Below the pieces are notes generated by a model. That model was not told where the DNA came from and did no database searches. It saw nothing but the letters and a program-made list of their open reading frames with translations. The translations under genes and the position numbers were made by a program. This document shows, piece by piece, positions 13,801-59,258 of a stretch of DNA of 64,000 bases; position 1 is the first letter of the stretch, and each line of letters begins with the position of its first letter. Source of the stretch: Chlorokybus atmophyticus (taxonomy: Eukaryota; Plantae; Mesostigma and Chlorokybus algae); contig RHPI01001403.1 in NCBI GenBank assembly GCA_009103225.1, forward strand, positions 40,327 to 104,326, read 5' to 3'.

Positions 13801-14293
13801 AACCTCTGCGTTGCTGGCATGCTAGCGCAAGCCAGTCAAGAGTAAACTCCTGAAGAAACGTTTGTGGATGTGTGCTTCACTGCACCTCACTACAAACTGC
13901 CCTTGGGATTGTAGATATCTACGATATCCATATGCATATCGCTAATAGCAAGGTTCATATCTATTTTGCGGACCCGCCACAGAAGTTTACCCGTGAAAAC
14001 TAATTCATCAGCACTGCTACAAAACCATCATTAGCATCTACAATATCATGATTAATGTCCATGTGAACCTCGATAAAATCATGGTAAATGTTCGAAAGTG
14101 TCGCCTACAATACAGCTGTAGGTGTCTATTATAATGTTTTATACATCTATAATGTCGGTATTGTAGGGTTCTTGCGGTCATTGTTGAGGCTGCATGCGGA
14201 TGGGTTATATATATGCAATTGATTGATATTATCATTATACGCATGGACATGTTTGCGAGCAATCAGCTGGGCAATATAGTGAACAAGCCCTAT

Positions 14294-14490
14294 ATTATCA
14301 ACAAGGATATCGACATTGTAATGTTCGTACATTGCATTATCACCAAGTTTATCAACATTGTAGCAAAACTTCACTGCATTATCAACAAGAACATTGACAA
14401 TGTAGCAAATGTACACTACATTATTAGCAAAGTTATGGATATTGTAGTAGATGCGCACTGCATTATCAACAAGGACATGGATAGTGCAGC
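14294..14490. repeat. 42-bp subterminal tandem repeat of element A, 5 copies
   Basis: ATTATCA(A/C)CAAG-like core at 14294, 14336, 14378, 14420 and 14462; period exactly 42. Confidence 0.9.
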
Positions 14491-14544
14491 AAAGCGCAGT
14501 ACAGCAGAACCCGCTGCAACTACACATGAGAGGTTCTACCACGT

Positions 14545-17281
14545 CTAAGTCTTGCTCTTGTAGAAACCGCCGATGCAGCCTTCAAACGCGCAACCCGAGC
14601 CCGCGCACCGCACATGACGGGCATAGCCTGTCGGTGCTGTCAAAGCATGCGAGTTTATTTTGAGGTGCTCGATAGCATAATACAACTTGGAGTACAGCAA
14701 GTGAAAGCAAACTTGTACTTACACATGCCACGCAATGCGATGTGCCTCATCCGGATCAAGCTGACGGAGGAATTCCTTATCATTCGTGTTGACTAGTATG
14801 CGGGTGTCGGGCACAAGTACCTTGCGTACCCAGATAGGGACCTCACCTGCAAATGGTTATCCAAATTGAGACAACAAACTACCCAAAACAGCAACAATCT
14901 TGAAGACTTACCAACTTTCAGTACAGTCTTATGCACTCTGCACTCTGCCTCCTCAGATAGCGCCTCCACAGTGCCTTTGGCTACAGGCACCTTGCTCTTG
15001 GAGCTCCACAGCAGGACTGCATCTTCGTCTTTGAACTGGAAGAAGCCTTGGACTTCGTCCTCCGGTGAGGGGCTCTCTTCGTTGCGAGCCACAAGTTGCT
15101 GAGACGCCTGTGCACATTTATAAATGTTGTGTTGTGGTTATGCAAGACAAATGTGTTGACAGATGTGCTCTTACCTTCTTGTGTGCTTGACGTGCCGACA
15201 TGCGCGTAGGAGACACCACCTAAGGGTTGACCATTGTTAACCAGCAGCACATCTTGTCGTTAGCAGCAGCGTTATTTACCTTGTTCTTGGCCGCCGTCGT
15301 GCTCGCGGCCTTGGCCGCCTGCTTCTTGGCTGCCTTCGTGTTCGCGGCCTTGGCAGCCCGCGCCTTGGCCGCTTGCTCCTTGGCCGCCTTCTCGTTGGCG
15401 GCCTTGTCCTTGCCCGCTTTCTCTTTTGTCGCCTGCATTGCCAATGGCATGGTTATCAATGTACTTTCATAGTGCACAAGACACAGCCATTCAATGACCG
15501 CACATGGACAATGCCCTCATCTTTGTCGGTGGCCTCCTCGTCGTCCTCATCGCCATCATCAGCGTCCTCCTCATCAGCGCTCTGTGACCCGAACCGTTGA
15601 CCAATTTAATAAATAAAAGATTGCCACGACTTAGGCAGCAATACCTTAGACTGTTACACATGATGTTTGCGAGATGTAGGTGGGTAAAAACACTACAGGT
15701 GTTGACCCACTACCTTGTCCTTGTCTGACTTGCTCGCGGCCGCCTTCTCCTTGGCTGCCTTCTCTTTGGCTGCCTTCTCGCGTGCTGTCTTCTCGCGTGC
15801 AGCATTCTCGCGCGCTGCCTTCGCGCGTGCTGCCCTCCCTTTGGGAACCTACTCAGCATAACTGACAATGCAATTGGATTGTGTGATGTATATACAAAAC
15901 CTTACATTATCAATGCATGCACCTGTTTAGCGGTGGCCTCTTCCTCAAAGGCCTCCTCATCGCCACCGCCATCGTCGTCTTCCTCCTCGTCCTCCTCATT
16001 GTCGTTAGTGTTGTTAAGGCCTTGTCTGGCCTCATCGTTCACAAAGTCTTTGGCTGTGACCTACGACCAGAAGCATTGGTTAGTTTAGTGAGCAACACAT
16101 TGGGACGGGTCAGGCAGCCATACCTTTAAATACTTAAACTAGACACAAATGGACAAAATAGACAGCAACAGCAGCAGTATCAATATCTGCATGGACATTG
16201 TAGCTAACATTCTGACCTTGTCTTTCTTGGCCCTTCCTTGAGTCTCGCCTTCTTTAAATGGTGATGCGGGCTGCACATACACTCAAATTAGTAACTGCTG
16301 ACTACACGCACGCATGCATGCACGCGCACGCACGCGCGCGCGCGCACGGACGCATGCGCATACCCACGCTAACAACCTAACCTTCTTTCTCTTCAACTTC
16401 CGTTTGACGATCTTTCCCTCCACTGCATTTTCTTCCTTTGTCTTTGCACTCTGTGCACACATGTAAAGACTTCACACATGCTTATACTTACACACCATGT
16501 AGATGTTGGATTTAAACTTACCCGCTTGGCGGTATACTTCAGTTGCGATAACTTGCGTAAAGCCTCTTCTCGAAGCTTCACCGCACTCCATTTGGGGAAA
16601 TATATCTGCAAGGCCCTGTTATACATAGACGCATGTATGCATGAGCACTTGGATACAAATGCCTAATGTTTAATGTGTGATGTACTTACGTCTCCAACAT
16701 GTCCCTTCTGCCTGGAGGGATGTGCGTCCACTTGGTGCCAAGCTGGATGTACTTACAATCTACGAAAAGCTTGACTTCCTTCTGCACACCAGAAGGAAGT
16801 AGACATGCATAGTAGCTTTGCGATTGCCCAATGCCAAATGCCCATGCTTACCCGGACTCCCTCGCCGTAGTCCACATCATCTTTGAATGCGTACGGGGTG
16901 ATGGTCCCAAACTCAACCCTCATCCTCTTCCTCAACTGTCAGACAGCAATTATTGGTAGCTATGTTGGTTAGATATGTGCAAACACAACGCAACCTATCG
17001 TGTGCTCCTGCGCCAGCTCCTTTTCCCTTTCATTGGAGGCTTTGGCGTTGTCGTCCTCCTCGACTTCCTTACCTGCAACAACCACAAACAATGAGACCAA
17101 CAAACTAGCATACTTCACAGCATGCTCACACACTACAAGTAAGCGTACTGGTGCTTGCAGAGTGCCTCTGCTGCTGCTTTTGGTGCTTCTCAAACGCTTT
17201 CACAAGCTTGCCAATATGCTTGTCGGTGGGAGAATCCACCTCGTTGCTCATGATGACTGGCTTCTGGCTCGCTGCAACCAT
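14545..17281 (-). CDS. TnpA/TNP1-like accessory protein of element A (multi-exon, probably disrupted)
   Basis: ATG 17281 (MVAASQKPV); exons KEVKLFVDCKYIQLGTKWTHIPP and ALQIYFPKWSAVKLREEALRKLSQLKYTAKR; Lys/Ala-rich region; VPVAKGTVEALS...HRIAW; final exon HVRCAGSGCAFEGCIGGFYKSKT-TAG. Confidence 0.65.
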
Positions 17282-17519
17282 CAGTTGTCAAGCAGACAGC
17301 CTAACTGTATGCGCGTGTGCTTGTGTGACTGCTGCATGCCTGCTGAATGAGTGATGGTCTGTGCACAAGCATGCGCATACAAGTGTTTGTGCGTGTGAGC
17401 GTGAGCGCATGAATGAGTGAAGTGCAGGAGCGTAAGCGTGTGCGCATGTGACCATGTGTACAGCAGAACCTAGTTGTTCTCTCAGAGCCAGCATTTCTCA
17501 GAGACCCAACTTGTCACAC

Positions 17520-17620
17520 CTTCAGATTGGTCCAGTATGGTCGTGTAAAGTGTTCAGCGAGGGCTTCGCGCCACGAGGGTTCGGTAAGCAGCACCTGGAG
17601 CTCAGGGTACTTGCCCCTCT
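17520..17620 (-). pseudogene. UNG: Captured uracil-DNA glycosylase (UNG family 1) exon
   Basis: 101-nt exon with CTCCAG acceptor and GTGTGA donor encodes RGKYPELQVLLTEPSWREALAEHFTRPYWTNLK, matching the start of the UNG catalytic domain (LLxExSWxxAL.xEF.KPY). No catalytic GQDPY exon seen. Confidence 0.7.
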
Positions 17621-19243
17621 CTGGAGAAAAAAGGACAATGCCAGTGAGCAATGCGCGTGCATTCCACCACGCAATTGGTATAAGGACTGCAAGTAAAACA
17701 TGCATGTGTGCATAAGCCCATCCGTGTGCGCGTGCATTTTGGGGTGAGTCCGCATGTGTGGGTGTAATTGGTTGTGTATGAATGTATGACTTACGGAAGG
17801 ACAGTAGCTGGAGAAGCTGCGAGGCCAGAAGCTTCTTAAGCTGCGAGGCCTTGTCGCTCCAGGCAATGGATGCTGCCGTTTTCAGGTACAGCACCTGGCA
17901 ATGCAAACACAAGGAGTCAGAACGCTAACTTACTTGTTTATGTGCGCGTGCGCGTGTGTGCGCATGTGACCACCATGTGTACAGCAAAACCTAGTTGACA
18001 GCTAAAACCAGCAACAATCAGCAACAACCAACAAGCTGGTTGTTGCTGATTGTGCTACAAGCAACAAGCTGGTTGTTGCTGGTAGCAGCACAACAACCAA
18101 CAAGCTGCCCACTGTTGACTTGTCCATTCAACAACAACTACTAATGAAAAAGTTACCAATACAGAGAGGGGATAAGCTATCAACCAGCCACAGTTAGCAA
18201 CAACCAGCTTGTTGCTAGTAGCAGCACGACAACATGCCCACTGTTGCATTGTCCATTCAACAACTACTTTCGAAAAAGCCAACGCAGAGAGAGGGGGGGA
18301 GGGGATAAGCTATCCAACCAGCAACAGCTAGCGTACCTTGTAGCACCATTTCCTCATGTATGCCTCGCCTCACACGCTTGTCGCCCAGAATGTCGCCGCC
18401 TTCAGTTTCTGATTGTCACGTTGAAGCGCAAGCAGCGCGAAACCCTAATTAAAAAGCCCTAATTAAGGTTATGCATGTGCTCACGCTAACATTATCGCTG
18501 ATTTGACACATTACTCATGTGTTATGCTAGTGTTTAGCGCCGCAAAACACCCAACAAACCCAACCAAATGACATCATGCAACATCAATTGCCAATGCAAT
18601 ACCGGTAGGTTGCTAATTAATTAAGCAGTGCAAAAATAGAAGTGATGCTCCAAGAACGCACGTGCGCAAGGCAGGCATGCAGTTGCGAGTGCATGGCGGG
18701 CGAGGAGTGAAAGGACAGCCGGGAGGGAGGCGGCGAAGGGAAGGGGGGCAATAGGGAGCTGGTTGTGGTTGAGGTTGTGGTGGACAGGCGGCGGAGGTGA
18801 AGGGGAGCTGGAGGTACGTAGCTGGTCTGGAGGAACATTGCTGGAGTGACAACGTTGCTGTCACTCCAGCAACTGCAGGCGGCGAGAGGGAGGGGGTTGG
18901 GGCAGTGTTCATGCCTCGGGGCATGGGGAGGGGGAGGGCAGAGGGGGAGCGTTGCACAGCAGGAGAATTGGAAGGGCGGCCACAAACATGTCCGTCCAGC
19001 AGCTCAGCGGCCTCAAGTGATACTGAGCCTGTGAGCGCCGCTAAGTCTGCTGAGCACTCACTGCTGCCAGCTGGCAGCCAACCTGCCCAGCCCGGTCCAA
19101 GTTCTTCGGACAACCCAAGTAGCAGTTCAACCAGCTCCGACAATGTCTTTAGTTTGAGGCATGTTGACCAGCTTGATCAGCAATCACAAGCTGGTCCGTC
19201 TCATGTACACTACGACGGTTACGTCATGTCTTGCACATCAATT

Positions 19244-19826
19244 GACCACGAATGGTCCGTACCTCTGGACCGGGATTTTCTCCTGCTAAATGAGATTAGC
19301 GGACCATATATGGTCGGACTGTTAATGACAGTTGGACCATGCATGGTCCAAATTTCACATGAATGGTACTATTGTCCCTTGAGACGCACCAGGCATGGTG
19401 GCCAGTATACATGAGATTTGTGGACCATGCATGGTGCGATGCCCCCTGGGATAGTGGACCATGCATGGTTTATTACTTCCTTCATGTCCAGTGACGGAAA
19501 GTCGCACCATACCTGGTCCATGGATATGGACCGGAAGTCTTGTTTGTTACTGAGATTGTACGGACCATGCATGGTGCGCTGCCCTCCTGGCACAGTGGAC
19601 CACATATGGTGCCGGTCTGGTCGACAATCGCACCATGAATGGTCCATGGCTACCGTCGAGGTGTTGCGCATACATGGTCCACAAGCGGCACCATATATGG
19701 TTCTGCCAGACACCGCACCATACAGGGTGCGGTCTACTTGATTTGGTGCACCAATCATGGTCTGTCATGATGTCCATGGGAGCCATGCATGGTGTGAGCG
19801 CTGTTTCATGCACCATGCCTGGTGCA
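19244..19826. repeat. Array of about 16 palindromic (G/C)ACCA-N4-TGGT(C/G) sites
   Basis: Examples TGGACCATGCATGGTCCA (19333-19350) and ACCA cores at 19303, 19388, 19424, 19458, 19506, 19564, 19599, 19632, 19690, 19717, 19750 and 19812; intervening sequences differ; spacing often 33-36 bp. Confidence 0.9.
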
Positions 19827-20159
19827 TACAATCCGCCACGCATACAATTCACAGAATTGCTGTAATGGGCTGTCAATAAATAGTCTAATCGTGATCATTA
19901 GTATCAAGCTAGCATCATGTTCTATACCTACAGTCTCCTATATGCACTGCACGCTGCTGTGGACAGTTGCAGTTGGACCCCATGTGAAGCCACTCCCGGA
20001 GATCTTTCCACATTGTGTGCTGACTCCCAGCCTCAGGAGCCAACAACAGCCTCAGGAGTTAGAGACACCCTTGCTTGACAGCCTCTGTGGACAGCCCCTC
20101 CAGCCAACTCATGCATCAAATATCTGCGAGACAACTGTGAGTCTACCTGTGCTTACACA

Positions 20160-22151
20160 AGACATACAGTATTGAGACACACATGTAACTGTAGCACAGT
20201 AAACCACGCACCTATGGATGACGAGGGCTGTCGCATCCACTGCCTCTTGGGTTGCCATGGCTTCTTCTTCCTTCCCTCGCTCAACAGCCCTGCAATGTGT
20301 AGTCATCATGACAACTACCCAAGGACTGTTAATGACTTGCAGTTCAATATGCACACCTGGTAGTTTGCGAGATTCATACCGCCACTCGCACCCTCCTTCA
20401 ACCTCGTTGTTCGCCACCAACCACTTTTTCTTTGCTGCAAAGCTGACAATTGCTCGCAAGATCCTCTCGTCTGGATGAGACTCCATTCGCTCAGGATCCT
20501 TGAAAGCAGCTGGTGACGACCGGTGAACACCGCGTGCTCAATGTGCTGGTAGTATTCGTACACGTCCATCGCCTGCTCTCTGGTGGGAGCATTTGGTTTG
20601 GTGTCGCAAACAATCGCAGCTACATAATCCAAGTCCATTGCAAATGTTTGACAGTCGGAGATGGCTCCAGCAGCCAGCACATGTCATACATCCGTCAATA
20701 GATTGCATTGGCGACTGTCCATGGGACAGCCTGCGACTGTCAAGTGACTGTGAGGACCACGAGTGCGCGGCGTAACATAGCGCCATACAAGCATGGTGTG
20801 ATATGTGTGTGCGACTGTTCGTGTGTGACAGAGTGCAACAGATAGTTGGAGACAATGCGTAACGTGATGTAAGAGATGGTATGTGTGCTGTTGTGAGTGT
20901 GTGCGCAAACGCGTGCCAATAAGTCATGCCGTGTGCTAACAACAGCCTTTACTGACCTCTGTGTCTGTGTCTGTGCTGTGCCGAGCTGCGGTCGTAGGCA
21001 GTATGTCCTTGATGCAACCCGGCACCCCAATGTGATCGTCGTTGCCGCATGCCTCACAGGGACAGATGCCTCCGCCGGCCAAGAACATCATGGGCCACTC
21101 CATCTCCCTGCCCTGCATGTTGTTTAACACAGAAACAGTCTTGCACTTATGCACCATACAGTCACAGCAAGAGCATATCCACAGCAAGCAATGTACCTCC
21201 AGAGTACGCCCACCATGGCAGCTGCTTGCCAGCTGGCCATAGAGAAAATGCCTCTCTTTTACAGGTAGGCGAATGCCATGGCACCTCAGGCAAGAGCAAA
21301 TCCTCTGGGAGACTTCTTGCTGCTCGGGTTCTTCAACAGCGTCTCTGTCACTAGTCAGCGCATGCAAGTCGTCAGTTGGCATGTCAACAATCTCTTGCAG
21401 GTCTGATTGTTGCCATGAATGCTGAGAGGGGGCAGCACTGCTGGTGCCGGCCATGTTTACAGTCGGCTGTGGAGCAGACTGTTGTTGAAGTGGAGTTGTC
21501 GCTGCACTGCCGGTGCCAGCCATGTTGACAATCGGCTGTCTATTGAATTGCGGTGGAGTGGCTGTTGCGGCACTGCTGTTGCGGGCAACATCGACAGTCG
21601 GCTGACCACCTAACTAATGCCTTGGGTGAAGTGTGGCTGACACTCTACTGGTAGTGATGCCGGCCACATGGACAATTGGCTGTTGATTTGCGAGAGGCCT
21701 ACAGAAATCCTGCAATTAGACCATATGCACTGGCACCATCAACTGACAGCAATACACAGCAAGGCAGCTAGTGCACGCAGTTCGTCGATAGTCTCCGAGC
21801 ATGGTGAAGGTAGCTGTCACAGCAAGGATAGTAGTTGGCATGCATAGTAGACCGCGTGACCATTGCGTGAGAAGAAAGTAAGGTAAGCAAGTAAACTTAC
21901 TGCTCATGCTGCTGGCTGATCTCGCCATCAAGCTGGTCGTGCGTGGCCTCAAGTTCATGGGCAGGCTGTGGGCTGTCAACATCTTGCTGGACATCAGCCG
22001 CAGCTCCCTGCTCCGGCAAGGGTAGGGAACTCTGTTGGCTGCGACGGCGGTTGTTCCTACGAAGGGTGTTCCTCTTACTGGCTGGTTGCAAGTTGATTCC
22101 CAGCTTAGCACTAATGTCCCTGGCAAAGTTGACAGCTTTCTTGCTTGCCAT
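20160..22151 (-). pseudogene. Orphan Cys/His-rich protein gene inside element A
   Basis: Telo-box 22240; ATG 22151 (MASKKAVNF); GTAAGT donor at 21900; four QP(I/T)V(N/D/H)(M/V)A repeats; Cys-rich ORF 20936-21523 (CSCLRCH..HCLLWICSCCDC..HKC..GICPCEAC); C-terminal ORFs 20315-20680 and 20109-20486; in-frame TAG at about 21614. Confidence 0.55.
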
Positions 22152-22254
22152 TGTTATTCCGCCAACATTCCTCCACCAAGGGCACCGCCAAGAGGCCGCC
22201 GCCACCATCAAGAGCGCCGCCGCCAACTCAACGAGCGCTAAAACCCTACTGCGC

Positions 22255-23190
22255 AGACCATGGTATTATGAGCCCATGCACGTGAGTTGACAGTCGCACC
22301 ATGCACGATGCGACGATCACTTTGACAGTAGTCATTGCCCACCGTTCGATATGCATGGATCGACGGTCAAAAGAGGCTGAGCTACGTCTTGGCCCAGCCT
22401 TTGAGCAAGATCAGTTCAAAAACATAGTTAAACTGGGGGGAAACTGGGGGGAAACTCTCATGACTTACCTGTGAGAGCTAACAACGGTACGTATACACCT
22501 GATCATTTTTAGTGCAGCTTGTTTCCAGCAGTTTTTCTTACTTGACGCGCCAGCAGTGGTCCACCTTAAGCATTAACAGTCGGACCATGCGAATCAAGTT
22601 GACAGTCGCACCATGCACGGTGCGACTGTCAATGTGGGCAACTGATTGGCTAGGCATCAGAGTTTCATGACTTGGTAAACACTGCTGGCGCGTCAAATAA
22701 AGAAGGGATTATAGCAGCCACTTCCAGACACCGTTAGTGCGCCTCTTCTCAGGAGCGTACAAGGACCATGCACGCTGACCCCTCTACGCGACTGAGGGAA
22801 GGGGCGTATTGACGGTGGCTGCCGAAGCTGCGGAAAATGTGGTATGACTTGAATATATGTAGGGTGATATTGGCTAGTTTTGCGCACACATTAGGTGTCG
22901 ATATGACCGTCGATCTATGCTGATCGAATGGTGGGCAATGTATCATACATAGAGTTAAGACTTGACAGTCGCACCATGGTGCGACTGTCCATGAGCTGAG
23001 CATTCCTCAGCAATGGTCCGCCCAATCATTTATGTTTGGACCAACCTCGGACCATGCATGGTTCAGCAATCATGGAGAACCGACCACGAATGATCCGTAC
23101 TGTCGTATAAACTCGGACCAGGAAGGCTTGGTTAGGTTAAAGACCATGAATGGTCCGCAACCTTACGAAAATGTGGACCAGTACAGTCGG
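22255..23190. repeat. Second cluster of ACCA-N4-TGGT / GACAGTCGCACC palindromes
   Basis: GACAGTCGCACC-ATGCAC-GGTGCGACTGTC (22601-22630); perfect 26-bp palindrome at 22964-22989; further sites at about 22290, 22765, 23048, 23080 and 23141. Confidence 0.85.
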
Positions 23191-24178
23191 GTCGCCCGAG
23201 GGGCTTTTCCCTGCTACCCATCTTGCAAGCCTCGACCCCGTGTGTCGGGCGTGATCAGCGTGTTACACGAAGAGTCGCATGGAAAGTGCTGGCTGCCGGG
23301 GTTGGGCAGTCATGTATTTGCGCGTGGATTCATGGCGGATCGAGGTGGGACGTGATGGGTTTGGAGGATTGGGTGGGGTGGTGAGTCCTCAAGCTTCGGT
23401 GCGGGTCGCGGCGTTGCGTGGTATAACGGCGTCGTGACTCTGCAACCCATTTTAGCATTTTAACTGAATATGACCGGCCAAATGTCGATGCTGTTTAACG
23501 ACAGACTAACGATGGTGTTATGTTGCGAGCAGTCGATTGTCAACGCATGCATGTCAACAAATGGTTATTGTATGTTGTTGTGCTCATGCAAGCGATGTGC
23601 CTCGCCGACGATCCACGCGACCTTGCATGCATCCAATCCAGGCCGCCGCCGGCCTGGTGCCCAGGCAGGCGGCGGTCACAAATGGCGCAATGAGGGTCGG
23701 CGCTGACTGGCTGGTCGGCTCTAGCGCCCCCCCACTACTACAGAGCACATGCTGCAATGCCGCCGCCACCTCTCCCTGCGGCACACAATGACGCCGCCCT
23801 CCCCACCAAGGAGGAGGTGACGGTGGCCCGGCATGACCGCGCGGACAACCCGAGCAACCCGCGGACATGACACGCATGGCATTGACAGCCCGATTGACGA
23901 GCGTGGCACTTCACGTTGGTCCGCGGCGACACACGCCGACCAGACCGCGCAAATTGTTGACATTCGCTGCACACGGCGTGTCACATCCTGCTCGACCAAC
24001 CGAACAACACAGGACCCGCCGTGCCCCAGCATGGCACATCCCGTTAAAGTAGCGAGTTTTTTGCTCCCGAGGCAAGGCACATCCACGCGGATGCGCCGAC
24101 CCCAAACTTCTTTGTATTCAAGCCAAACCCTCGGACACACGGCATGTCGCGCGGAGGCGACAAGCCATTTTCTGCAAG

Positions 24179-27100
24179 ATGGAAACCCCTCGGTCGACCC
24201 GACTGCATAGGCAACCACCAGTCAGAGAGTGAGACACTGGCACATCTCTGAATTGGATTACTTTGACTCCACACAAGGTTCTCCCGCAACATGTACTGAC
24301 ATTGTTTCTTCTCTCCAGCTGTCCGTGTAAAGATGATCGTGCGCGGCCAGCACCAAAGCACATCTCCAAGCGCACACGTCAGCGACATATCCGCACGCGT
24401 GGACTTTAAGGTCCGCAAGTAAGTCATGTTTGTTTTGGTTGTATTCTTTTACACGTGTTAACTACTTAAACCAACGCACAGCATTCTTACAAACACATAC
24501 AGTCCATGCAGCAGTTACTCAAGCTATTGTTAAGCAGTAGGAGACAAGCACTTTACGTTATGGCATGAGGCAAAACCAAGCCCAGCGCTTAAAAAAACGC
24601 AGTTCAAGTGCTGGCTTGAGATGCAGTTAAAAGCCCCACATAACTGTAATAGTTATGTGCCTGACCCCTCATTTCCCCTGTACAACGGTGTCATCCCACG
24701 AGGCAAACGGTTTCAACATTACCGCAACAACTACATGGTCTACAAATCAAGAATCGCAAATGCTGGTTTAGGTTAAATTTTTTATCAAACATTCCGCGCA
24801 ACATCTTGCTCATGCCCTACGACGGTCCGCGTTACACCTATGCGGAGAAGATTGCGGTGTTTGGCAGACAATTGGGTTGGCAGGGTAGATACTTGCTTGA
24901 GGTTAACTCCCGTCTCGCATTGCGTGAGCGTGAGTACATCAAAGGGGATGTGTGCGACGGCAATGTCGCCGGCTATATCAATTCTGGGTCGCGTCGTTGG
25001 AAGCCCAATGCTGAGTATTATGTAGATGATAAACGTGTGTGGATTCGTAGCCTTAGGGACATTAGCATGCATGAGGAGCTGTTGACTCGGTATGAGTTTT
25101 GCCCGTCCCTTCCAGGCCTTACATTAGTTACGTAGTGCAGGTGTAGCGTTCAGACTGACTTTACAGCTGTATTGATGGTGTAATTCCTGACGTTATAGAC
25201 ATGATTGCTGTTAATACCTGCAGTCTTGTCTACAGTCTTATAGTTGCACATGTGTTTGAATGCGTGTTCATGCGTGATGCCGACAGGAGCCTGCACATCC
25301 GTCTCTCGTAGAAGATACCAAGATAGCATTAGAGCATACTACAATTAGCGAGCATGATCCCCACTCTACTTACGAAGTAGCTGCCGAGTTGACATCGACG
25401 CCGCGGTTGCCTTCATCTGCACCGACCAGAGCTCATGCAAGCGAAGTGACATGTGCGGCCCAGCTACAATCATTACAGGAGAGAGATGACGATTATGTGC
25501 AGCTTAACATAGGGGTCCGGGATACCACTCCAATGCCTTGTGCCGACGAACCGGTCATCACATGTACCTTTACAGGAGCTGCAGTCGTTACACAAAAGTG
25601 TGGGTCATTTGCAGCTGGATACATGTTGTCAAGACGCTCCTCAGGAGCCATGCGCGGCACAACAGTCAGCACATGAAGATGTCGGTCATGTCCAACTTGA
25701 CATGGGAGATGAAGAGGGTTCTCCGGTGCCATGCACGGCCCAGCTGCAGTTGTCACGGGAGGAGGAAGACGCTGATTGCGTACAGCTGGACAATGACTAG
25801 CTTGATGAGTTCTTAGAGGATGTTTCTACCCGTGCTGTGAAGCCACTCAGCACGAATCCGGAGTTCAATGTGAGGATGGCATTAATTCTAATGCTGGAGC
25901 TTGGGTGCCGGAGCAAATGGAGCACCAAGTCATTGTCTAGCTTACTGAGTTTGATTTAAACGATACTCCCGGACTACGACATACCCGCAAGCAAAGCAAA
26001 GCTGCTGGTGAGATTACGACATCTGGAGCTTCTTTTTAGAATCATCCACGCCTGCCTGAATGACTGCTGCTTGTTTAACGAAGCAAGCAACGACTTTGAC
26101 ACTTGCCCACACTGTCAGGCTGACAGGTAATAATATCCTTTGTGATACATCTTTGGTCAATGCTCATAGACATTCGCATAATTGCACCGCTGATCTGTCA
26201 TTCTTGTTGTGACTTAGATACAAGGAAAGTTTTGACCAGGGTCTGACTCGCAAGAAAAAGAAAAGGAGGCCTCGGAAAGTGTTCCGTTACTTTCCGCTGA
26301 TTCCACGTCTGCAGCGAGCACTTAGATTGGAGGCTTTTGCCTCACACGTGACCTGTCACGCGGAGCATCGCTCACAAGACGAGTGGATGCGCGCAATATA
26401 CGACTCACAATGCTGGTCGCATGTGGAATAGCTCTACACCGACTTTCGTCATACACGCCACTTGCGGTTGGGGTTCACAACCGATGGCGTCAACCCCTTC
26501 AAGAAAGGCTCCTCCACGCAAAGCAACTACAGCATGTGGTCACTCACCGTCTTCTGCATAAACCTCCCGCCTTCGTTGGTGTTCAACAATAGCTTTTTGT
26601 GAACCGTTGGCATCATACCAGGTGCGCCAATCTAGTCTGTTGATGTGTAATGTAGCGGACATCATACACTTTTTAGATGTACATGTGGATATAATAGCTT
26701 GTTATGTTGATATTGCGCATAATAGCAGCGTTTGTATACTCGTTTTTGTCTGCTGAGCTTGTTCTGCAGGACCCAACGAGCCCAAGCATATCAGCACCTA
26801 CATTCAGCCTTTGGTTAACGAACTCAAGCAGTTGTGGAGGGGTGCACCTGTTGTAGACAGCATTGAACGCACACCGAACCAACCTTCCAAGTTTCTTCTG
26901 AAAGCCATCCTACTTTGCTGCCTACACGACTACCCCGGCTTTGGAAAATGCGCAAAACGTCAGGTGCAAAGGAAAGTTTGCAGTGTGGTTTGCGGTGATG
27001 CTTTCAAGGCCGAGCACAGCTCATGGTTGTCGAAGACGGTAATGGTTGGGCACCGTCGATTCTTGCCACTTGATCATCATCCATATCGACATGACGAGAG

Positions 27101-29409
27101 CTTTGGCCCCCCAGAAGAACGGCCGCCACTTGCACCTTTGACCAAAGAAGATGTTTGCTTCGGAGGTGAATTACCAAATCTACTGATCAATTGTCTTTCA
27201 CCGCACATGTGTGCAAGCCTGGCATCAATGTGTGTTGCATTCATGCGTGCGTGCAAGCATTAATGATGTTGTCTATTGCTAGGAACATGCGTAGAGAGAT
27301 GTGAGCAAGGACAAGGCGACCCTAGAAGAGCAAAGGAGTGAAAGAACAAAGGCATCAAAGGCCTCTCTCCCTTTGAGTAATTACCGTACGGGCATGAAGT
27401 CCCCGGACACATCATCGACCATATGCATTACGTTGCCAACACCGTACGCCGACTTTTACACCTCCTGACCGGCAAAGCTGATATGCAAACACAATTAGAA
27501 CATAGTGTTGGTATTCATCATTATTGATCACAGCGTGGGTTGTTGCAGGTGATGATCTTCGAGGAAGGTATGAGCTGATGGAGATGGACAAGCGCGCTGA
27601 CTTGTGGCCCGTGAAGAAGATTAATACCAAAGGTAACGAGGTGGTAGTGAAGCCCCCGGCCCCTTTCACCTTCACGCGTCAAGAGCTACGCGACGTCCAA
27701 GCAACTTGGAAGAATGTGAAGTTCCCTACAGGGTTTGGAGGCTCAAAGGTCACCGAAGTTATTGCCCGTGAAGATAGATCCCGCCCGAATTCCCATGACT
27801 TGCACAATATAGGTAGTCTCTGTGAATTTCTATAACCACCATTGTAGCATATGCGTGTACATGTGTACACAATGCACGTATGGCAAGTTGTCATGTAACT
27901 TCAACGGTTGTTTTACAGGTAGCATATTGCTGCCCGCAGTTGTTTCGGATAGACTTGAATCAGCCCAGAGGCTAACACTGGCTCGGTTTTCCCATGCTTT
28001 AAGCCAAGCGTCCGCCGCTTGGCTGCCCAATGATGAGCAGCTTCTCCGTGACGTAAAACTCGACATGATGGAGTGCTTGTGTCTGCTGGAGCGCGATTTC
28101 CCGCAATCTTTCCTTACCGTCTCGACTCATCTAATCCTACACACGGTGCAGGAATTGCAACAGTGCGGTCCAGTTCGAGGCGTGTGGATGTTTGGGGCTG
28201 AGCGCGAGATGCAGCACATTCGCATCAAGTCGGTCAGTCGAAAGGGCCCAAAAGCGAGCGTTGCGTCAGCTGTTCGAAGCGACGAGATCGTCTTCAACTT
28301 TTCCAAGGCGACGAAGGCGATTATACCGGAAGCTGGAATGTCCGTGGCGTCCATTGAATCACGACCAGTGCATTCTCTATTGGGACCAGGCAGCCCATGC
28401 GTCCTGAATCAACATGAGCGGCGCGACATTAATTTGTATTTACGCAACATCAGTACCGAGCTTGCAGACCTTGACAGGTAATTTATCAATATTGTTTGCT
28501 ACTTTATCAATAAACATCTCGACTTCATACAGGTTTGTAAGCACATTATTAATATGTTACCATACAATATCAGTACACAGCTCGTATTTCAATGACTTGA
28601 AACATTATGACATGACCACCAACTGGAGTCTTTGCCGCAACTCATAATGCATATGCCTGTTGCAGGCAGTACGAACTATTTCGCAACCGGCTCAAGCGCA
28701 AAAGGCGTAAAGGTGCAGGTGGAAGCGAGGACTTGAACACCGTGACGCGTGCGGATTTTTTGGAGCGCTGTCTAGACGTAATCAACAACGCTAGCTTTCG
28801 ACTACGAGAGCTGTTCTTGGGCTGCCCACCTCAAGCCAGATGCTACAAACACATGGAAGTCGAGGGGCGGCATTTCCGAATCGCGGAGTCGGACAAGGGC
28901 AAGGTCACGAGTGATGCTGGCGTTGAGGCTGCGTTTACATCGGACTTTAGGAGTTGGAAAGGCGACAAGGCAATAGTCACGGCAACGCTCCCCTACTGGG
29001 GAATCTTGGATAAAATATTGGAGATCCGCTTCTTGACGACGATGGTGAGTTTAATGTGTGTTGTGTTTTCGAACATCACAGAATGTATGGTGTCCGTGCG
29101 ATCAAAAAGTATGGCAATATGTAATCAAGTTCTTGCGTGCAGCTGCACATTTGCAAAGTGAAGTGGTATAAGAAGCAATTCGACAAGGAGCAAAGGCCTG
29201 CAACAACAGCAACTGGCTGCTTTTGGGTGGACAAAAACACGTTCACCAAGCATGAGCCCTTTATTAAGCCCGGCCGTATAACGGGCCAAGTGTTCTTTGT
29301 ACCAGATCCATCTCACCGCACCCGCTTTATTGTCCTCGAGAAGGAAAACGCAAGCAGTGCAGCAATGACGGCATCGATCCGTGCACCCGTATCCGACGGT
29401 TTCACGTGA
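24179..29409 (+). pseudogene. CACTA transposase TnpD of element A with N-terminal transposase-associated Cys motif and SET domain; multiple lesions
   Basis: Exons: PPVRD/CPCKDD...RTRQRH; SET; acidic repeats; IIHACLNDCCLF..CPHC; RKVFRYFPLIPRL; KAILLCCLHDYPGFG; HRRFLPLDHHPYRH; LERDFPQSFLTVSTHL; GPVRGVWMFGAER; CKVKWY...GQVFFVPDP. Stops at 24407 and 25798 among others. Confidence 0.9.
24733..25093 (+). other. SET domain within TnpD of element A (1-nt frameshift at about 24774)
   Basis: YMVYKSRIANAGLG / LSNIPRNILLMPYDG...DGNVAGYINS..KPNAEY..RVWIRSLRDISMHEELLTRY reproduces the SET motifs GxG, YxG, N.A.(F/Y)IN(H)S..PN and RDI..(G)EEL...Y. Confidence 0.85.
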
Positions 29410-30159
29410 GAAGCAGATGTGAGCTATTATAGGGAGCTGCGGGCGTCAATGCTAGAAGAAGGGCGTGGTTTGTGTTTGAAGGGGCGGAACGCAGTTGACG
29501 CCGCCGCCGACGTTCAAAGTGAGGAAGAGGAGTAGAGGATATAGGCCAAGCAGCGCAGCAGATGCTATGTGTTTAACTACATTACAGATGATAGTATTGG
29601 CTGGTGCTGTTATGACAAAGGGGTTGTCAAGTGCCAGCTCAATGCATAGATTGATGATGTCCATACGATGAAGGACGGCTATAGTGATGTCTATAAAGTA
29701 GATACGGTTGACTGCGTCTGATAGTCATCGTGATGAGGTCGTAAGATGTCATTTCCTTAACAATGTGGACAATATCAATGTTAATATGGGCAGACTATAG
29801 TTTGGTCCATAAAGTAGATGTGAACGCGGGCTGCCCGTCTCGTGGTGTGAGAGGAATTAATAAAATATCCATAAACTAAGTGATAAAATCACTGTAAATC
29901 TAGCAACCCAGATTCAGATCTATGATGCTTACATTTGCATGGGTCATGAGGTCCAACATCGAGCTGTGTTCGATCACACGCCCATAACCACATCTACATT
30001 ATCAACATATTTGTGGATATTGTATACATGCCCTCTCCCTTGGATGTGATTACAGACGCAAATCATTACTTTATCCACACAAATACTGATAACATAGATA
30101 TCTACAATAGGGGGGGAAGTTTGTAATGCCTGCGGGCTGCCGGCAGCACACTCTATATG

Positions 30160-31880
<1,721 letters not shown>

Positions 31881-32249: not shown

Positions 32250-32599
32250 CACTACAAAAATATTGCCTGTTTCAGACGTCAGAATTTCAGCTGTGTGCAG
32301 CTGACATTCAGTCGTAACGGAACTGAATTGCAGCACATTGGTAGCAGTCAGACATTAAAGACTGAAGGCGCAGCTGAACTTGAGATGCTAAGGACTGACC
32401 TTGTCACCTGGCCTTGACTCAGATCAGACTTTTGGTACTCACATTCAGCTGCGCAGCTGAACATTCGATGCACGAACGCCTAATGTAAGTTGTTAACAAC
32501 TAGCAACTGAATGCAAGTTGTGATTGCGAATTAAGCGCATTCAGAGCGCGTGAGTTTCAGCACAAGGCCCATAACAAACAATGATCAGTCACTCGTTGA

Positions 32600-35500
32600 T
32601 GCTCGATTGCAAGTACACATGTTGTCCTTGCCCTTGCTATTGCTATCAACTGGCCTGCTGTTGACAGTATCTTGTCGCAATGCGCTGCATGTACTGGCAG
32701 CGCTACCAACACCAGCCCACACGACTCCACTCAAGTGCTGTCGTCGTCAAGTTCGTCTCCTAATTAGCGGACAGCTAGTTTGCCTGTGCGCTCTTGTGAC
32801 TAGTCAAGCGTGTCAATGACTTGTGTGAATGCACAAAACATGCATGTGTGTAATTGGTTATACAACCAACCAGTCATGGCGTTCAACCATGTACCTGTGT
32901 CGCTGTCCTCCTCCATCTCTTCTTCACCTTCGCCGACAGCTGCTGCATCTCCCACCTTGAAGGCTTCGCGCGCTTGTCGCAGTAGTTTATCACGTGCGCA
33001 AGCAGACATTGAAGAGCGCCTCTCCTCCGCATCAGCAGGAGGAGAGGGATCCTCCATGCGAGGCCTCACCGACTTGATGAATGCCACTCTCGTGGCCACC
33101 TCCTTCTCAAGCACTATCAGCCTGTCACAGTCTGCCACAGTCGGCATGGCAAAGAACACTTGCCCTGTGAGGCGATCCGCCTCAATGTAGGGCTCCTCTT
33201 CCTCCTTGAAAAACTGGTTTCGATGCACCCAGAACCTCCCCGTGTCTGTGACTGAGGATTGTTGGTTTTCAAATTGCTTCTTGAACCACTTCACGCGGCA
33301 AAGTAACAGCTGCATCAATAACGCACCTCAGCACAAAGTTCCATGTACGTGAAGGTTGGAAGATACATGCAACACTTCTCACCTCAGAACCGAGAAACTC
33401 TATGTGGAATATGTTGAGCAAAACGCCCCAAAAAGGTAGGATCGCTCGCACAGGTTGGTTATCATTGCGGCGACTTACATACTCGCATTGAAACCCCGCC
33501 TCCACACCACAGTCAAAAGTTACCTTGTCTTTGTCCTTATGTGCTGTCCTGTAGTGCTTGCCCTCAACCGTCATGTGTGAGTACGCGCTGCACTCAGCCG
33601 GGCAACCCAAGAACATGGCACAGGCCTTGGGGCTATACTTGTGCAAGAGATCCGGCTGTTGTTGCAACATCGTGGCAGCATCAATATCATCCTTTTCAGA
33701 CCCATTGCGCAAGTGCTTGCCGTGCCTATCGCGCTGCTTGACTTGACTCTGTATACGCAGTCTATTCACTTCATCCAGTAACCTGGCAACATACATGTAC
33801 AGTCTTAGGTTTTGCCACACACCTGTACATGCCAAACATGGTTAACCCCTGAGTTGATCACACTTCGCACTCACTTGTGTAAGTCTCCAACTTCGGGGAA
33901 GTTGTTGCGCACATAAAGGTTGATGAGCTGCCTGTGACGCTCACTTAAGCGCCACTTGCGTTTGGTGCCGAGGGGAATAGGCATAACATCAGATCTGTCA
34001 AACAGTCGGACTCCGGCAGATGGCCATATCTGCTTCATGGCGCTACTGCAACACAACAAAATCTCTTCCAACTCTATGGACATCACAATGCTTGCTTCGG
34101 GGTCTTTCCGACTCGTTGCCTGCACACAATGTGTTGAACTCAAGAAGGTACTAGACTAACCATTGGCTTGAAGTAGCCTCAACAACTGCATACCTGCTGG
34201 CGTATATCTTGCATTCGTCGCTCAGCTCCAAACATCCAGGTGCCTCGTACAGGACCAAGTTTGCGGAACTGTTGCATTGAGTGCAGCAGCAGGTGCATGG
34301 AGATGTTGAAGATGCCGCGAGGGAAGTCTCTCTCTAACAAACACAATGCCTCCACCAACTCCACTTCCAACTCATCTAGATCCTGCTTCTGTTTAGAGAC
34401 CCACGGTGAACCGACAATGGATAAGGCATCGCATAACTTCACTAGAGTAGTTCTTTGACGGGGTTGTAGCTTTTGCGATATGACTGCTGGAAGCAAAATT
34501 GTGCCTGCAATGTAAGAGAAGTCACACTTGCAGGAGCTCTACGGCACATTGGCTGTGCGCACGACTGTGTGCGGTTGCTTGTGCGCGTGACAACCACATG
34601 TATACCTGTAATTACATACCTATGTTGTGCCAGTTGTGAGTCTTTGCCTTGTATCGCCCCCCTCCCGAGAGCACACCAGCCAATGCTCGACCCCCGAATC
34701 CGGAAGGGTAACGCATGGGGACCCATGTTTGTCGGACTTGCTCCATTTCCTGTTTTGTAAACACATAAGGTGCAGGTGGCCTAACATAGTACGCCTCTCC
34801 TTGCCGGTTTGTCTTCATGATTGGCCATAGCTCCTCTATTACACCTCTCTCCATGAACTCGTACCTGTAATGCAATCAACCTTAGCATTGGCCTGTTTCA
34901 AATCTCTCACTTACAACGTGTCACCTGTCGCGCAATGTGTTCCCTTCTTTGCCTGTAAGACACAAGACAATCTTCTTGATGGCGTTTGAAAGGCAGTGCA
35001 TGCGGTCTATTAGATGGCCCGGGACATGATTCCAATAGGGCAGTAGAGCAAATGGCGAGATGCCTTTGACGCAAGTTAGCACTGCGGGGTGCTGATTAGC
35101 TGGCCCTTCGTATGTCTCTCCAGCAATCGCTGCGCGCATGACGTCACCATTGGAGAAAGGAGCTGGAGGTGGTGCCGTCTCTGTTGAGCCCCATCCGGTG
35201 CTGAGCCTAAATGCATGACCTTCTGGCAAGCAGCGACGATGGTTCATAAACACGCACTTTCTTAACCAAGAGACGTATTCCCCTTGGTAGTTTGGACCGC
35301 ACACTATGCAGGCAATGCGACCACAGATCTGTCTACCAGCTGTTTTACCAAGACCTGGATAATCATGTAAACAAGTCATCAATATCGCCTTCACTGTGAA
35401 CTCAGCTGGCAGGCCTGGTGCTGGCGCCACGTCATGCACCACCACACCTTCATCCCAGAGGCGCATGAGCTCCTTCACGAGTGGCATGATGTACGTGCTA

Positions 35501-37450
35501 AGGTTTTTTGGCTCTCCAGGGCCTGCTCAATGCAACATTGCAAAACTTCAATGGCATGCTGCTGTGCGTGTTTGCGTGTTTGCGTGCGTGAATGCATGCG
35601 TGCGCGCGCGCGCAACTTACCAGGTATTATACCTACAGTCCACATGTATTCTCGCTTGAAGGTAAGCCAAGGAGGAATATTGTAACAAAAGACTGTCAAA
35701 GGCCACATTGAACACGTGCTCTGAGCTGAAGGACCTCGTTTGAAAGGGCTGACCCCATCAGTTGAAAAGCCCAAGCGTAGGTGGCGCGGTTCTTGCCGTA
35801 GCTCAGGGTATAAATCTTCAAGTTCCGTCCAGGTAGGAGAATCGTAGATGCTCCTCATCCATGGGTCGCTGGAGCGGTTGCGTTTATGATAGCTGAGGTT
35901 TGCTGCAAAATGTCGGAGGCGAAAGGCGCGCTTGATGCGTGGTATGAGCGGCATGCAGTGATAAACTTTGCGAGGTTTTTGCTTATCCATGGTGCCTTTG
36001 AACCTGTGGTGCAGGACAACATGTCTGAGCTGGTACAAGTTAAGGTCAAGGAAGCACATGCAACATGAAGACGCACCTCGGTTCGTTGCACTGCGGGCAG
36101 ACCTCCTTATCTTCGACCTCACCGGCAAACAGAACGCAGTCATTAACGCACACGTCGAACTTGATTGTGGGCAGGGCAATGTGCTTCAGAGCATGCAGCA
36201 ACTGCCGTTTGCTTGTGGGAAGTAAGTTGTCGGAAGGTAGCATGCATGCGTGCAAGAACATCGCCAGCTGATCCAGACCCTCTGCACTCGATTGACTTTT
36301 AAGTTTGTGAATGAGAAGCAGCAGAGAAGCCATTTCCATTGACAAGCTGCTATTCTCATACAACGGTACTTGATGAAGGTGACTGAGATCTTCGGCAAAC
36401 AAGTCCACATGGTCTTCACCACCTGCCTGCTTGAAGTCCTCCCCTAGCCACTCCTCTGCTGCTCCCTCTTCCTGCTCCTCTTGAAGTCCATCGTCATCAC
36501 GTGTGCAATCCCCAAGTACGCTGCAAATTACATAAGTTAGCATGCGCATGCGTGTCAGGCAGTTCATGACGCCGTGTGTAAGCCGCCAAATTCACATCAG
36601 ACCTGTCAAGCCATCGTGTGTGGTGTTCACCACGCTGCTTGCTAGTCTCATCCACACAAGCTTCGCTGCCGACTTTGTCATCAGTGTCGTGCCGCGCGCC
36701 TCATTTTGCACGCCAGGATCCTCACAACTTGCTAATAACGGTACCGCTGTCACACGCTCGCCTTCAACTGCTGCGGCTGGCGAGGTTTCATTGTGCGCAG
36801 GGCTGAATGAGGCTTCAGTTGGCGGCTATCACAATGCGCTGTTTGTTAAGCGTAATCAACTCTCACCCACGTACTCACCCAGCACAGATGCGCGCGCACA
36901 CACATGATCCATGACAACCACGACAGCACACAAACCTGCCAACGTCCATGTTGTTGAAAATGTCTCCACTGTTGCCGCAAGCTGATGGCATCCTTCAATC
37001 CTCTGCAAAAGTTTGCACATGCAATACACTTTGGCGAACGGCAACGAGGCCCTCCGGACGGTCGACTGCATATTCCCAAGCCCTGTCGAAATCATGTCGT
37101 GCGTGTCACACAAGTGTTTCCTAGCCATTGCTCAATTGCAATTCAACGCTGTGGCAATGGTATGTTAGAGATTCCAGAACCATGACATGCACACGCATGT
37201 CCATACAGAGAGCACCCGCACACACCTGCAAACACAAGCGTCCCTCCTCCCCTCCCCCCCCCCCGCGCGCGCATGCGCACACGCACCTTGGACCACTACT
37301 TTCAGCTGTCAAGGCTCATGGGCGCGTCGAAGCTGATGCCCTCCGGCTCAAGCAGCATTCCTGCACATGCACGACAATTACAACAGAACGCAGGTATGCG
37401 TATGTGCTCGAGCTCCTTGCCGTATGTGTTTGTCGTAGTTGCAATGTCTG
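32600..37450 (-). CDS. CACTA transposase TnpD of element B (multi-exon, few lesions)
   Basis: YCMCKL/CRGLKDAISLRQQWRH (frameshift at about 37010); DVCVNDCVLF..CPQC; HLRLGFSTDGVSPF; AILMTCLHDYPGLG; IDRMH; LERDFPRGIF; GPVRGTWMFGAERRM; CRVKWF...GQVFF. No SET domain seen. Ends are approximate. Confidence 0.9.
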
Positions 37451-38318
37451 GGTATGGGTATGGGTACTTACCTGTTAATGAGATATTAACTGAACGGCAC
37501 GCACGCACGAACTGCACGCATTAGCATGTGTAAGTTGTACTTATATCTTACAGCAATCGCAAATAACAATTCGTTTCCCCTCCTGTTAACAGGCCGCACG
37601 CAATCACCAATGACCACGCGCTCTACCTTTACTGCACCTGCTGAGAGTGCTCCCGCAGTACCACAAGCTGTTCGCTAGCACCTGTGTGTGAACGGAGAAG
37701 AGGCACATGTGTGTGCGTGTGCGCTTGTGTGCACGCATAAGCGATAGCAAAACTGTTCGTCAGCACCTGTGTGCGTGCGCTTGTGCACGCATGAGCATGT
37801 GTGTGCGCTTGTGCGTGCGCGCACTCAGCAGCATGCGTGCGGGTGCATACACATTTGCATGATGTCACTGATTGTGCTGTGCAGCATAGTAATATGACAC
37901 AGTCAGCAGTGATAGACATGTACTAGTCTACTAGCATAGCAGTAGCATAGCAAAAACATGCTCAAAATGACAACACCGGAGCAGTCAACACGCTACCTAC
38001 CAGTGTCTTCCGCCTGTCCGCTCTCTCCGCATAATTCTCTATGCCTCCCACCGCCACTCCCGCTGCCGCCAGCAGACCCAGCATGTTTATCAATACTACA
38101 TCGCATGCCATGCAGGACTTGTGATGGGACTGTTCTCTATGCCTCGCTGCTCCCCCCGCTGGCTGTTCTCTCCCTTCCTCTCCGAGACCCGCGCAATCCC
38201 ACTGTCTACGCCTATCCAACCACTCTCCTCCTTCCCCTCTATGCCTCGCCGCCGCTTCCAGCGCCGCCGCCGGCGACAACCCTGCGTACCGCGTGCATGC
38301 CGCCGCTGTTGTCGTAGC

Positions 38319-38360
38319 AAACCCTAGGGCCATAAAAGGGGCTATAAAAGGGGCTATATA
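38319..38360. promoter_or_regulatory. Putative bidirectional promoter of element B
   Basis: Telo-box AAACCCTAG followed by tandem CATAAAAGGGG/CTATAAAAGGGG/CTATATA TATA-like motifs, between the divergent TnpD and TnpA-like genes. Confidence 0.45.
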
Positions 38361-38710
38361 CTTAGGTATTACTGTTAGCGAAAAACTGACTGCAGTGCAT
38401 GGCCGGCTACACATGCATGGGAAGAGCCCAGCGCCCAAGGCAGCATACAGAACAGCATAGAGAGCAACAGTTTCAGCTAGCAGGCAAGAGCAGGCGGCAC
38501 TAGCTAGCAGGCGGCAGTTGCTCTACGAGTAGCAAGCTCTACAGAAGTTGCTAACAGCAGGCGGCACTAGTAGCAAGGCGGCAGTAGTAGCAAGCAGCTG
38601 TAGCGACTGCAAGCAGCAGTAGAAACCAAAGGTGACACTGGCAAGGGGGCATACTTGTACAAGAGCTAGTTAGAATGCAGTTAGTGCTAGCCAGATTTGT
38701 GCTGAACAGT

Positions 38711-41083: not shown

Positions 41084-41929
41084 CAGTTTTTGACTAGCCG
41101 GTTACGTGTAGCGGCTTGATAGCTACCTGATACATCCTTGTAGTTAGCGCTCAAAATCTGATCACCAGCACTTGAGTCGTAGCGTTCGTGAATAGCACTT
41201 GGTGGTGCAGTTGCTGCGTTCAAACATTGGGTGCTGATTAGCAGCAATGCAAGTATAAATACAAGTGCATTGCTTGTACATGTTGGGCTGCTGAATGCCA
41301 GCACTTCAAGTGCGAATGCAAGCCGTTGCATGTGTGCAATGCATAACACAAATTCAAGTCACAATGACTGAATTCCAGCATTACGAAGTGCATGACAGTC
41401 AGTCACAAAACGCTGACTTTCAGCACTGGTATCAACGGTGAGGAGCTAGTGTAAAGCATGACTGTCAGGTGCAAACGTCTGACATTAGGACTGACATTTT
41501 AAGACGTAGTGGTAGGAGACCTTTGTGACTGATTGTAAGCTACTTACAGCTGATTTCGCAACGTCTGAATACCGCCCTGATTTTGTAGTGCTGTTACGCC
41601 CTTCCGAGCCAGTTTGCATAAGGCAGTTCTGCGAGTTTCCAAGCCCGAACGCTTAAGAGTTGTTCGCAGTACTAGACCGTGCACGTCCAGCCACTGATCC
41701 ATGATTAGATCTCTTAGTGACACACAATTTCTATCCCGCATGCCTCGACAAGGTTGAGCGCAGACTGATACACCCATAGGAGAGCAATTAAACAGCCTAA
41801 CAAGTGCTGTGACAAACGTTACACAGCCCCAACGTGGCTGTCACATTCTGCCAGTTGCGCTCTGGCCGTGCATTCACACAGTTCAAACAACGTTCTCCAC
41901 GGCGTGTACACTTGGTGTATATATCGCGG

Positions 41930-48875: not shown

Positions 48876-48966
48876 GGGGGGGGGGGGGGGGGGGGGGGGG
48901 NNNNNNNNNNNNNNNNNNNNNNNNNNNNNNNNNNNNNNNNNNNNNNNNNNNNNNNNNNNNNNNNNN
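48876..48966. other. Poly-G tract and assembly gap
   Basis: G run followed by N at 48901-48966. Confidence 0.98.

Positions 48967-59211: not shown

Positions 59212-59212
<1 letters not shown>

Positions 59213-59258
<46 letters not shown>

Follow-up and report, generated by a model that had tools for sequence, protein, structure and literature searches.

Whether a SET domain encoded within a transposable element of the alga Chlorokybus atmophyticus forms part of the element's transposase, or is carried by the element as a protein of its own, is the question raised by a locus on contig RHPI01001403.1 (assembly GCA_009103225.1). The analysis covered 64,000 nucleotides of this contig (positions 40,327 to 104,326 of the forward strand), here called the window and numbered from its first letter. 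The element belongs to the CACTA/EnSpm superfamily, and its SET frame lies on the same strand as the transposase gene. The original prediction for this locus was a SET domain spliced in frame into a CACTA transposase. One part of that claim stands, namely that a CACTA element carries SET directly upstream of its transposase; the in-frame splice is supported neither by the splice sites nor by a paralogous transposase in the same window. The reading tentatively preferred here, held with not quite even confidence, is that SET is accessory cargo of the CACTA/EnSpm element and is encoded as a separate small protein of about 170 codons (ATG 24621 to TAG 25133).

The predicted SET domain and the two parts of its open reading frame (ORF) are located as follows.

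~24732-25099, plus strand: SET domain, from Pfam, ESM Atlas, and motifs
24621-24773, plus strand, frame 0: N-terminal part of the SET ORF, with ATG 24621 and the domain start at ~24732 (YMVYKSRIANAGLG), placed by eye
24773-25135, plus strand, frame 2: C-terminal part of the SET ORF, with GNVAGYINSGSRRWKPN, EELLTRY, and TAG 25133-25135, from Pfam and ESM Atlas

A profile search, which the original prediction had proposed as a check, bears the domain out. Pfam PF00856 matches the ORF at 24806-25132 with 25.9 bits (E value of 1.4e-5; cutoff, 22.4) and the longer frame at 24665-25132 with 26.3 bits, covering profile positions 36 to 104 of 105. In the ESM Atlas, SET accounts for 89 of the 100 nearest clusters, with a best score of 0.97, and these are mostly minimal SET proteins of 80 to 130 amino acids. 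The motifs stand in canonical order, with YMVYKSRIANAGLG in frame 0 (to 24773) followed in frame 2 by LNFLSNIPRNILLMPYDG, GNVAGYINSGSRRWKPN, and HEELLTRYEF, the last of which contains the EELxxxY motif with its catalytic Tyr (25091-25093). The change of frame is a 1-nucleotide (nt) frameshift in a T run at 24773-24776, where frame 0 ends in NAGLG and a stop and frame 2 goes on with LNFLSNIPRNILLMPYDG. The frame is self-contained, running over about 170 codons from ATG 24621 to TAG 25133, with the stop 13 codons past EELLTRY and one frameshift between. Of the full minimal SET domain that had been claimed, the part recognized by Pfam and ESM Atlas is upheld; the N-terminal third, with the GxG S-adenosylmethionine (AdoMet)-binding motif in YMVYKSRIANAGLG, was identified by eye only and lies outside the part covered by the profile, and the 51-amino-acid N-terminal half alone is not recognized by ESM Atlas. 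At the position of the NHS/C...PN motif the sequence reads INSGSRRWKPN, in which the Asn and the PN are kept, His is replaced by Ser, and three residues are inserted. A single-sequence AlphaFold2 model of the SET piece had a predicted local distance difference test (pLDDT) score of 33 and was unusable. On this sequence evidence, the SET domain is real and is of the minimal type, with a domain of about 125 amino acids in an ORF of about 170 codons.

The SET ORF lies inside the following element, on the plus strand and about 0.7 kb upstream of a tnp2-type transposase.

13888-30128, plus strand: whole CACTA/EnSpm element, 16,241 bp, from an inverted-repeat search and reading of the flanks
13888-13933, plus strand: left terminal inverted repeat, 46 nt, 76% complementary to 30083-30128
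30083-30128, minus strand: right terminal inverted repeat, with CATTA in place of CACTA

A 3-bp target-site duplication, CCT, is present on both flanks (13885-13887 and 30129-30131). The left end of the element begins with CACTACAAACTG, and the right end, read as its reverse complement, begins with CATTACAAACTT; the termini are of the CACTA type (CACTACAAAC on the left and CATTACAAAC on the right, with one mismatch). By its termini, its 3-bp duplication, and its tnp2-type transposase, the element at 13888-30128 is a member of the CACTA/EnSpm superfamily. The transposase gene contains introns and occupies the 3′ third of the element on the plus strand, and arrays of ACCA-N4-TGGT occur within the element at about 19.3-19.8 kb. 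Pfam scans of hand-picked ORFs, roughly 35 amino acids or longer, found no domain in the other ORFs of the element, and none of the scanned ORFs, near SET or elsewhere in the element, matched PF01555 (N6-adenine DNA methylase). No further SET-like motif was found elsewhere in the window.

The transposase of this copy can be followed through six segments, largely by comparison with the paralogous transposase.

25287-25797, plus strand: open acidic, Ser/Pro-rich stretch, matching the acidic N terminus of the paralogous transposase
25795-26126, plus strand: conserved N-terminal transposase region (...HACLNDCCLF...CPHCQADR), tblastn against the paralogue with an E value of 2.6e-10; interrupted by stops at 25798 and 25957 and followed by the donor GTAATA at 26127
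26218-26621, plus strand: transposase exon with the start of Transposase_21, 58% identical to the paralogue, whose ORF is matched by Pfam; interrupted by stops at 26429 and 26600
26770-27476, plus strand: Transposase_21 exons (Pfam PF02992, 59 bits at 26811-27260), probably split by an intron (27166-27360) and interrupted by a stop at ~27378
27557-28478, plus strand: middle transposase exons, including DUF4218 at 27927-28478 (Pfam PF13960, 46.7 bits for the ORF at 27822-28478), similar to the paralogue
28718-29529, plus strand: C-terminal transposase exons, similar to the paralogue

Transposase_21 and DUF4218 thus lie downstream of SET on the plus strand, and the position originally given for SET, upstream of the transposase core on the same strand, holds. 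The acidic stretch contains four diverged repeats of about 25 amino acids (PC.AQLQ...E.D..VQLD) in 25287-25797, and its frame shifts near 25545 and meets a TAG at 25798. By hand count, repeat units 1 and 4 differ by about 5 silent and 13 amino-acid-changing substitutions, which gives no sign of constraint.

The lesions of the transposase number about seven in about 3.3 kb of coding sequence, comprising the stops at 25798, 25957, 26429, 26600, ~27378, and 29407 and the frameshift near 25545. The stop at 29407 is probably premature, because similarity to the paralogous transposase runs about 40 codons beyond it. Judging from these lesions, this copy of the element is dead. The stop count corresponds roughly to a decay of about 4%, which is enough for missense changes such as NH to NS, and the change of His to Ser in the NHS motif may be decay after insertion. 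SET carries one lesion in 0.51 kb, a density similar to that of the transposase. At the time of insertion, SET was thus probably no more damaged than the transposase. This argues against a long-decaying fragment and favors SET as a component of the active element that was under selection or had been acquired very recently.

A second CACTA element in the window, much better preserved, provides the comparison for the transposase gene.

32250-41590: second CACTA element, with the terminal inverted repeat CACTACAAAA and a 3-bp duplication, CTG
33049-36567, minus strand: paralogous tnp2 transposase, with long open exons and a protein identity of 31 to 58% to the transposase of the SET-carrying element

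The coding sequence of the paralogous transposase opens with an ATG of its own (36567), preceded by a stop at a distance of 8 codons, and its acidic N terminus leads into the conserved region. No SET was detected in this transposase or elsewhere in the element at 32250-41590. About 4.5 kb of this element (37.1-41.6 kb) precedes the paralogous transposase.

The splice into the transposase had originally been built on an exon upstream of SET.

24319-24418, plus strand: exon-like stretch of 100 nt, from a pyrimidine tract and CAG to GTAAGT, containing CPCKDD...RHIRTRGL; coding unproven

The layout described for this stretch agrees with the sequence. It has a good acceptor and ends in phase 0 at a perfect GTAAGT donor (24419-24424), and the AG at 24625-24626 opens the same frame, as had been stated for an acceptor at 24626. 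Both lesions reported earlier are also present, the stop at 24407 as TAA 24407-24409 and the frameshift near 24774 in the T run at 24773-24776. The claimed identity of the stretch as a transposase-associated CPC...RH exon, on the other hand, gained no support from Pfam, in which nothing matched even at an E value of ≤10 (the transposase-associated domain PF13963 included), from BLASTP, in which the sequence preceding the paralogous transposase gave nothing at an E value of ≤100, or from a permissive tblastn search of the whole window, in which that preceding sequence is not among the best matches. A motif common to the stretch and to the region upstream of the paralogue, IS.R...RH....G, was rejected as being at the chance level by the BLASTP and permissive tblastn searches. 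The ATG at 24179 could likewise not be confirmed as the start of the gene and stands in one arm of an inverted repeat (23184-23206 and 24183-24205). This 23-nt inverted repeat is 91% complementary, with arms 976 nt apart, and could be a small element nested here or a structural repeat internal to the transposon.

The stretch between SET and the transposase is laid out as follows.

25136-25286, plus strand: spacer from the SET stop to the next long open frame, with TGTAA at 25179, a frame-1 ATG at 25201, and the candidate acceptors TGCAG (25223) and ACAG (25286)

An in-frame fusion, in which active relatives of this copy would make a single polypeptide with a minimal SET as the N-terminal domain of the CACTA transposase, is possible but on the unlikely side. 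The two frames share a strand, and the SET stop is followed after 45 bp by an open frame 1 (with ATG 25201) and after 142 bp by an open frame 0. The latter extends over 84 codons (25278-25530) without an ATG, for which the chance in one of three frames is estimated at about 0.05, and it merges through the four acidic repeats into the region homologous to the acidic N terminus of the paralogue. The two acceptors in the spacer resemble those of the gene itself, and a join of 25126 to 25287 keeps the frame. The donors speak against such a fusion. Of the 12 donors identified across both transposase genes, 11 have G at −1 and all 12 introns begin with GTA or GTG; the acceptors are mostly TGCAG or ACAG. 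At the SET end, the only donor of the gene's own kind is G/GTATGA at 25090, which cuts between the Arg and the conserved Tyr of EELLTRY, so that the Tyr is lost, and which is out of frame with the downstream open frame. The only in-frame join that requires no extra lesion, 25126/25287, uses the donor TTA/GTTACG at 25127, which has neither the G at −1 nor the GTA or GTG start. Joining donor 25090 or 25132 to the acceptor TGCAG at 25223 leads into frame 1 and works only if a further frameshift is assumed at 25278-25309. A copy this decayed, with at least two frameshifts already, could have one, but the assumption amounts to special pleading. In addition, the paralogue starts at its own ATG without SET, the common 5′ transposase-associated exon that was supposed to precede SET is unconfirmed, and the nearest Transposase_21 clusters in the ESM Atlas occur with Transpos_assoc, DUF4218, and DUF4216 and none with SET.

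A separate SET protein carried as cargo is preferred over the fusion because the SET frame has both an ATG and a nearby stop and the paralogue has its own ATG and no SET, because the donor that matches the gene's own kind would destroy the SET catalytic motif, and because SET genes are documented as separate cargo of DNA transposons (10.1101/2025.02.11.637652 and PMC12730594). Several points weigh against separate cargo. The ATG-less stretch at 25278-25530 fits an internal exon fed from upstream, a gene placed so near the start of the next one could be expressed only in some special way, and the reading of NHS as N-S (INSGS) may mean that the domain is inactive. Furthermore, no second copy or relative of SET was found in any collection searched. 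With the C-terminal half of SET as the query, HMMER gave a single match among 1.84 billion representative proteins, and this match was rejected as a relative, being a repeat-inflated kinase artifact. The same half had no match in a word-indexed protein collection, a search limited by query length, and neither did the DUF4218 exon, under the same limit. SET had no match in metagenome and viral contigs, nor did a two-sequence alignment of the transposases; phmmer found no SET chain in the PDB, and NCBIfam and PHROGs gave no match.

The failure to find relatives would also be expected of a functionless fragment, specific to this copy or lineage, that was picked up once and has since decayed neutrally, as CACTA elements pick up pieces of host genes. 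The missing His of the NHS motif points in the same direction, as does the distribution of DNA reads. The reads compared with 24100-29900 came from two low-coverage runs (X1 and X2) among six that a search returned, and behave as thin DNA skims, with contigs of 100 to 200 nt that lie over introns and exons, some identical to the window and some 80 to 99% alike. The diverged contigs fall only on the transposase core at 26.2-28.0 kb, and no contig from either run lies on 24100-25069. The acidic N-terminal region of the transposase, however, is likewise without diverged contigs, so that read depth says little about SET. A contig from X2 is identical to 25650-25793 and then continues with GATTGTACGGACCATGCATGGT instead of the window sequence, joining the motif GGACCATGCATGGT; its tail holds the palindrome ACCATGCATGGT, which also occurs in the arrays of the element (19.3-19.8 kb and 23.05 kb). 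This contig points to another copy in the genome with an internal deletion or rearrangement. Against a captured fragment stands the state of SET itself, a complete domain in one exon-like ORF with 1 lesion in 515 nt, no more than the transposase has; a long-neutral piece should be worse off, and no conserved host SET family is close enough for a recent capture from the host. Such a fragment is regarded as unlikely. That there is no SET domain at all, and that the profile matched decayed sequence by chance, is hardly credible. The Pfam score exceeds the cutoff by no more than about 4 bits, the search of the PDB and the AlphaFold model brought no confirmation, and the N-terminal third is unrecognized, but an E value of 1e-5 per protein was reached with about 50 pieces scanned, the language-model search is independent of the profile and is dominated by SET, and the GxG, N-x-x...PN, and EELxxxY motifs follow one another in canonical order, with the frame that holds them open over about 170 codons (chance of about 3e-4). 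Other explanations are improbable.

Whether separate or fused, SET and the transposase most likely share a transcription unit; the gap of 45-145 bp between them offers hardly any space for another promoter. If SET is separate cargo, as preferred here, its protein would in active copies come from the transcription unit on the transposase side, and a single unit could yield the two proteins by alternative splicing. The precedent is En/Spm of maize, in which TnpA and TnpD are produced from one transcription unit by alternative splicing. En/Spm is also a CACTA element, and one promoter for two proteins would be a plausible expression route for a SET frame and a transposase lying so close together; TnpA, unlike the SET protein, is a DNA-binding protein and not a methyltransferase. 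The predicted substrates of the SET protein are lysines of histones or of some other chromatin protein, at the element or close to it, and their methylation would alter silencing or targeting.

Several further features of the window lie outside the SET-carrying element. A long (CA/TG)n microsatellite (31390-31800) stands just beyond its right end. The terminal motif CA[CT]TACAAAC also occurs at 54634-54643 and 63316-63325 on the minus strand, which may mark ends of additional CACTA elements in the same family group; the window contains 8 matches to this motif versus 5.9 expected, which is not above chance. A run of about 30 G residues is found at 48869-48900, and a run of at least 32 C residues, at about 59210-59610, borders an assembly gap; the window contains 357 N. 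At 50982-53932 on the plus strand there are host-like ORFs, one of which, by eye, starts like a TIR domain (YDVFLCHRG...) and contains a P-loop (GMGGAGKTQLA). In another ORF of this region, kinesin-light-chain-type TPR repeats can be recognized, also by eye. These features suggest an immune-type gene of the TIR/NB-ARC/TPR kind, which is consistent with a host of the green lineage.

SET genes have been described in several groups of DNA transposons. The HarbingerS and MuDR families of Phytophthora carry them (Kojima and Jurka 2014, cited in PMC12730594), and Helitrons with SET are cited in 10.1101/2025.02.11.637652. The element described here resembles these in having, next to the transposase of a DNA transposon, a frame for a SET lysine methyltransferase that presumably acts on chromatin. 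It is set apart from HarbingerS and MuDR by its CACTA/EnSpm affiliation with a tnp2-type transposase, by the minimal type of its SET, and by the head-to-tail position of SET directly upstream. A parallel in algae is the giant Plavaka of red algae, which is related to EnSpm/CACTA and carries the accessory genes PAG1 to PAG3, of which PAG2 combines an N6-adenine DNA methylase with SET; inverted-repeat arrays adjoin another of its accessory genes (10.1101/2025.02.11.637652). Both are large CACTA-related algal elements (16 to 19 kb) with a SET accessory gene, and the inverted-repeat arrays of Plavaka may be compared with the ACCA-N4-TGGT arrays at about 19.3-19.8 kb. Unlike PAG2, the SET frame found here has no methylase domain beside it in the scanned ORFs, and unlike Plavaka the element has a classical tnp2 transposase (Transposase_21 and DUF4218), CACTA ends, and SET directly upstream. 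SET cargo in DNA transposons is thus already known, and what is new is the position of SET directly before a classical tnp2-type CACTA transposase.

In its architecture the domain resembles the minimal SET proteins, such as chlorovirus vSET, those of bacteria, and a 99-amino-acid chlorophyte cluster in the ESM Atlas, which consist of the core without pre- and post-SET Cys clusters or reader domains; no relative at the sequence level was detected in the collections searched. SETMAR (Metnase) of anthropoid primates unites SET and a DDE transposase in one polypeptide and is a host gene that captured an immobile mariner. It resembles the locus only if SET and the transposase are fused; here SET lies in an element with its own ends and target-site duplication, and a joint polypeptide is at most predicted.

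If the fusion, rather than separate cargo, were true, it would be the first mobile SET-transposase fusion and the mobile counterpart of SETMAR. The transposase could then write a chromatin mark where it is bound, at its own ends or at its targets, and the family would lend itself naturally to testing whether transposases can mark the sites where they insert, a question that the dead copy in this window cannot settle. Chromatin-related cargo is known from other mobile elements, as in the TET/JBP genes of fungal elements and the anti-silencers of VANDAL elements. With SET as separate cargo, the preferred reading, a SET frame directly before a tnp2-type CACTA transposase would be one more arrangement of a chromatin enzyme carried in this way, and transposon-borne chromatin enzymes show how mobile DNA fights or exploits the silencing of its host.

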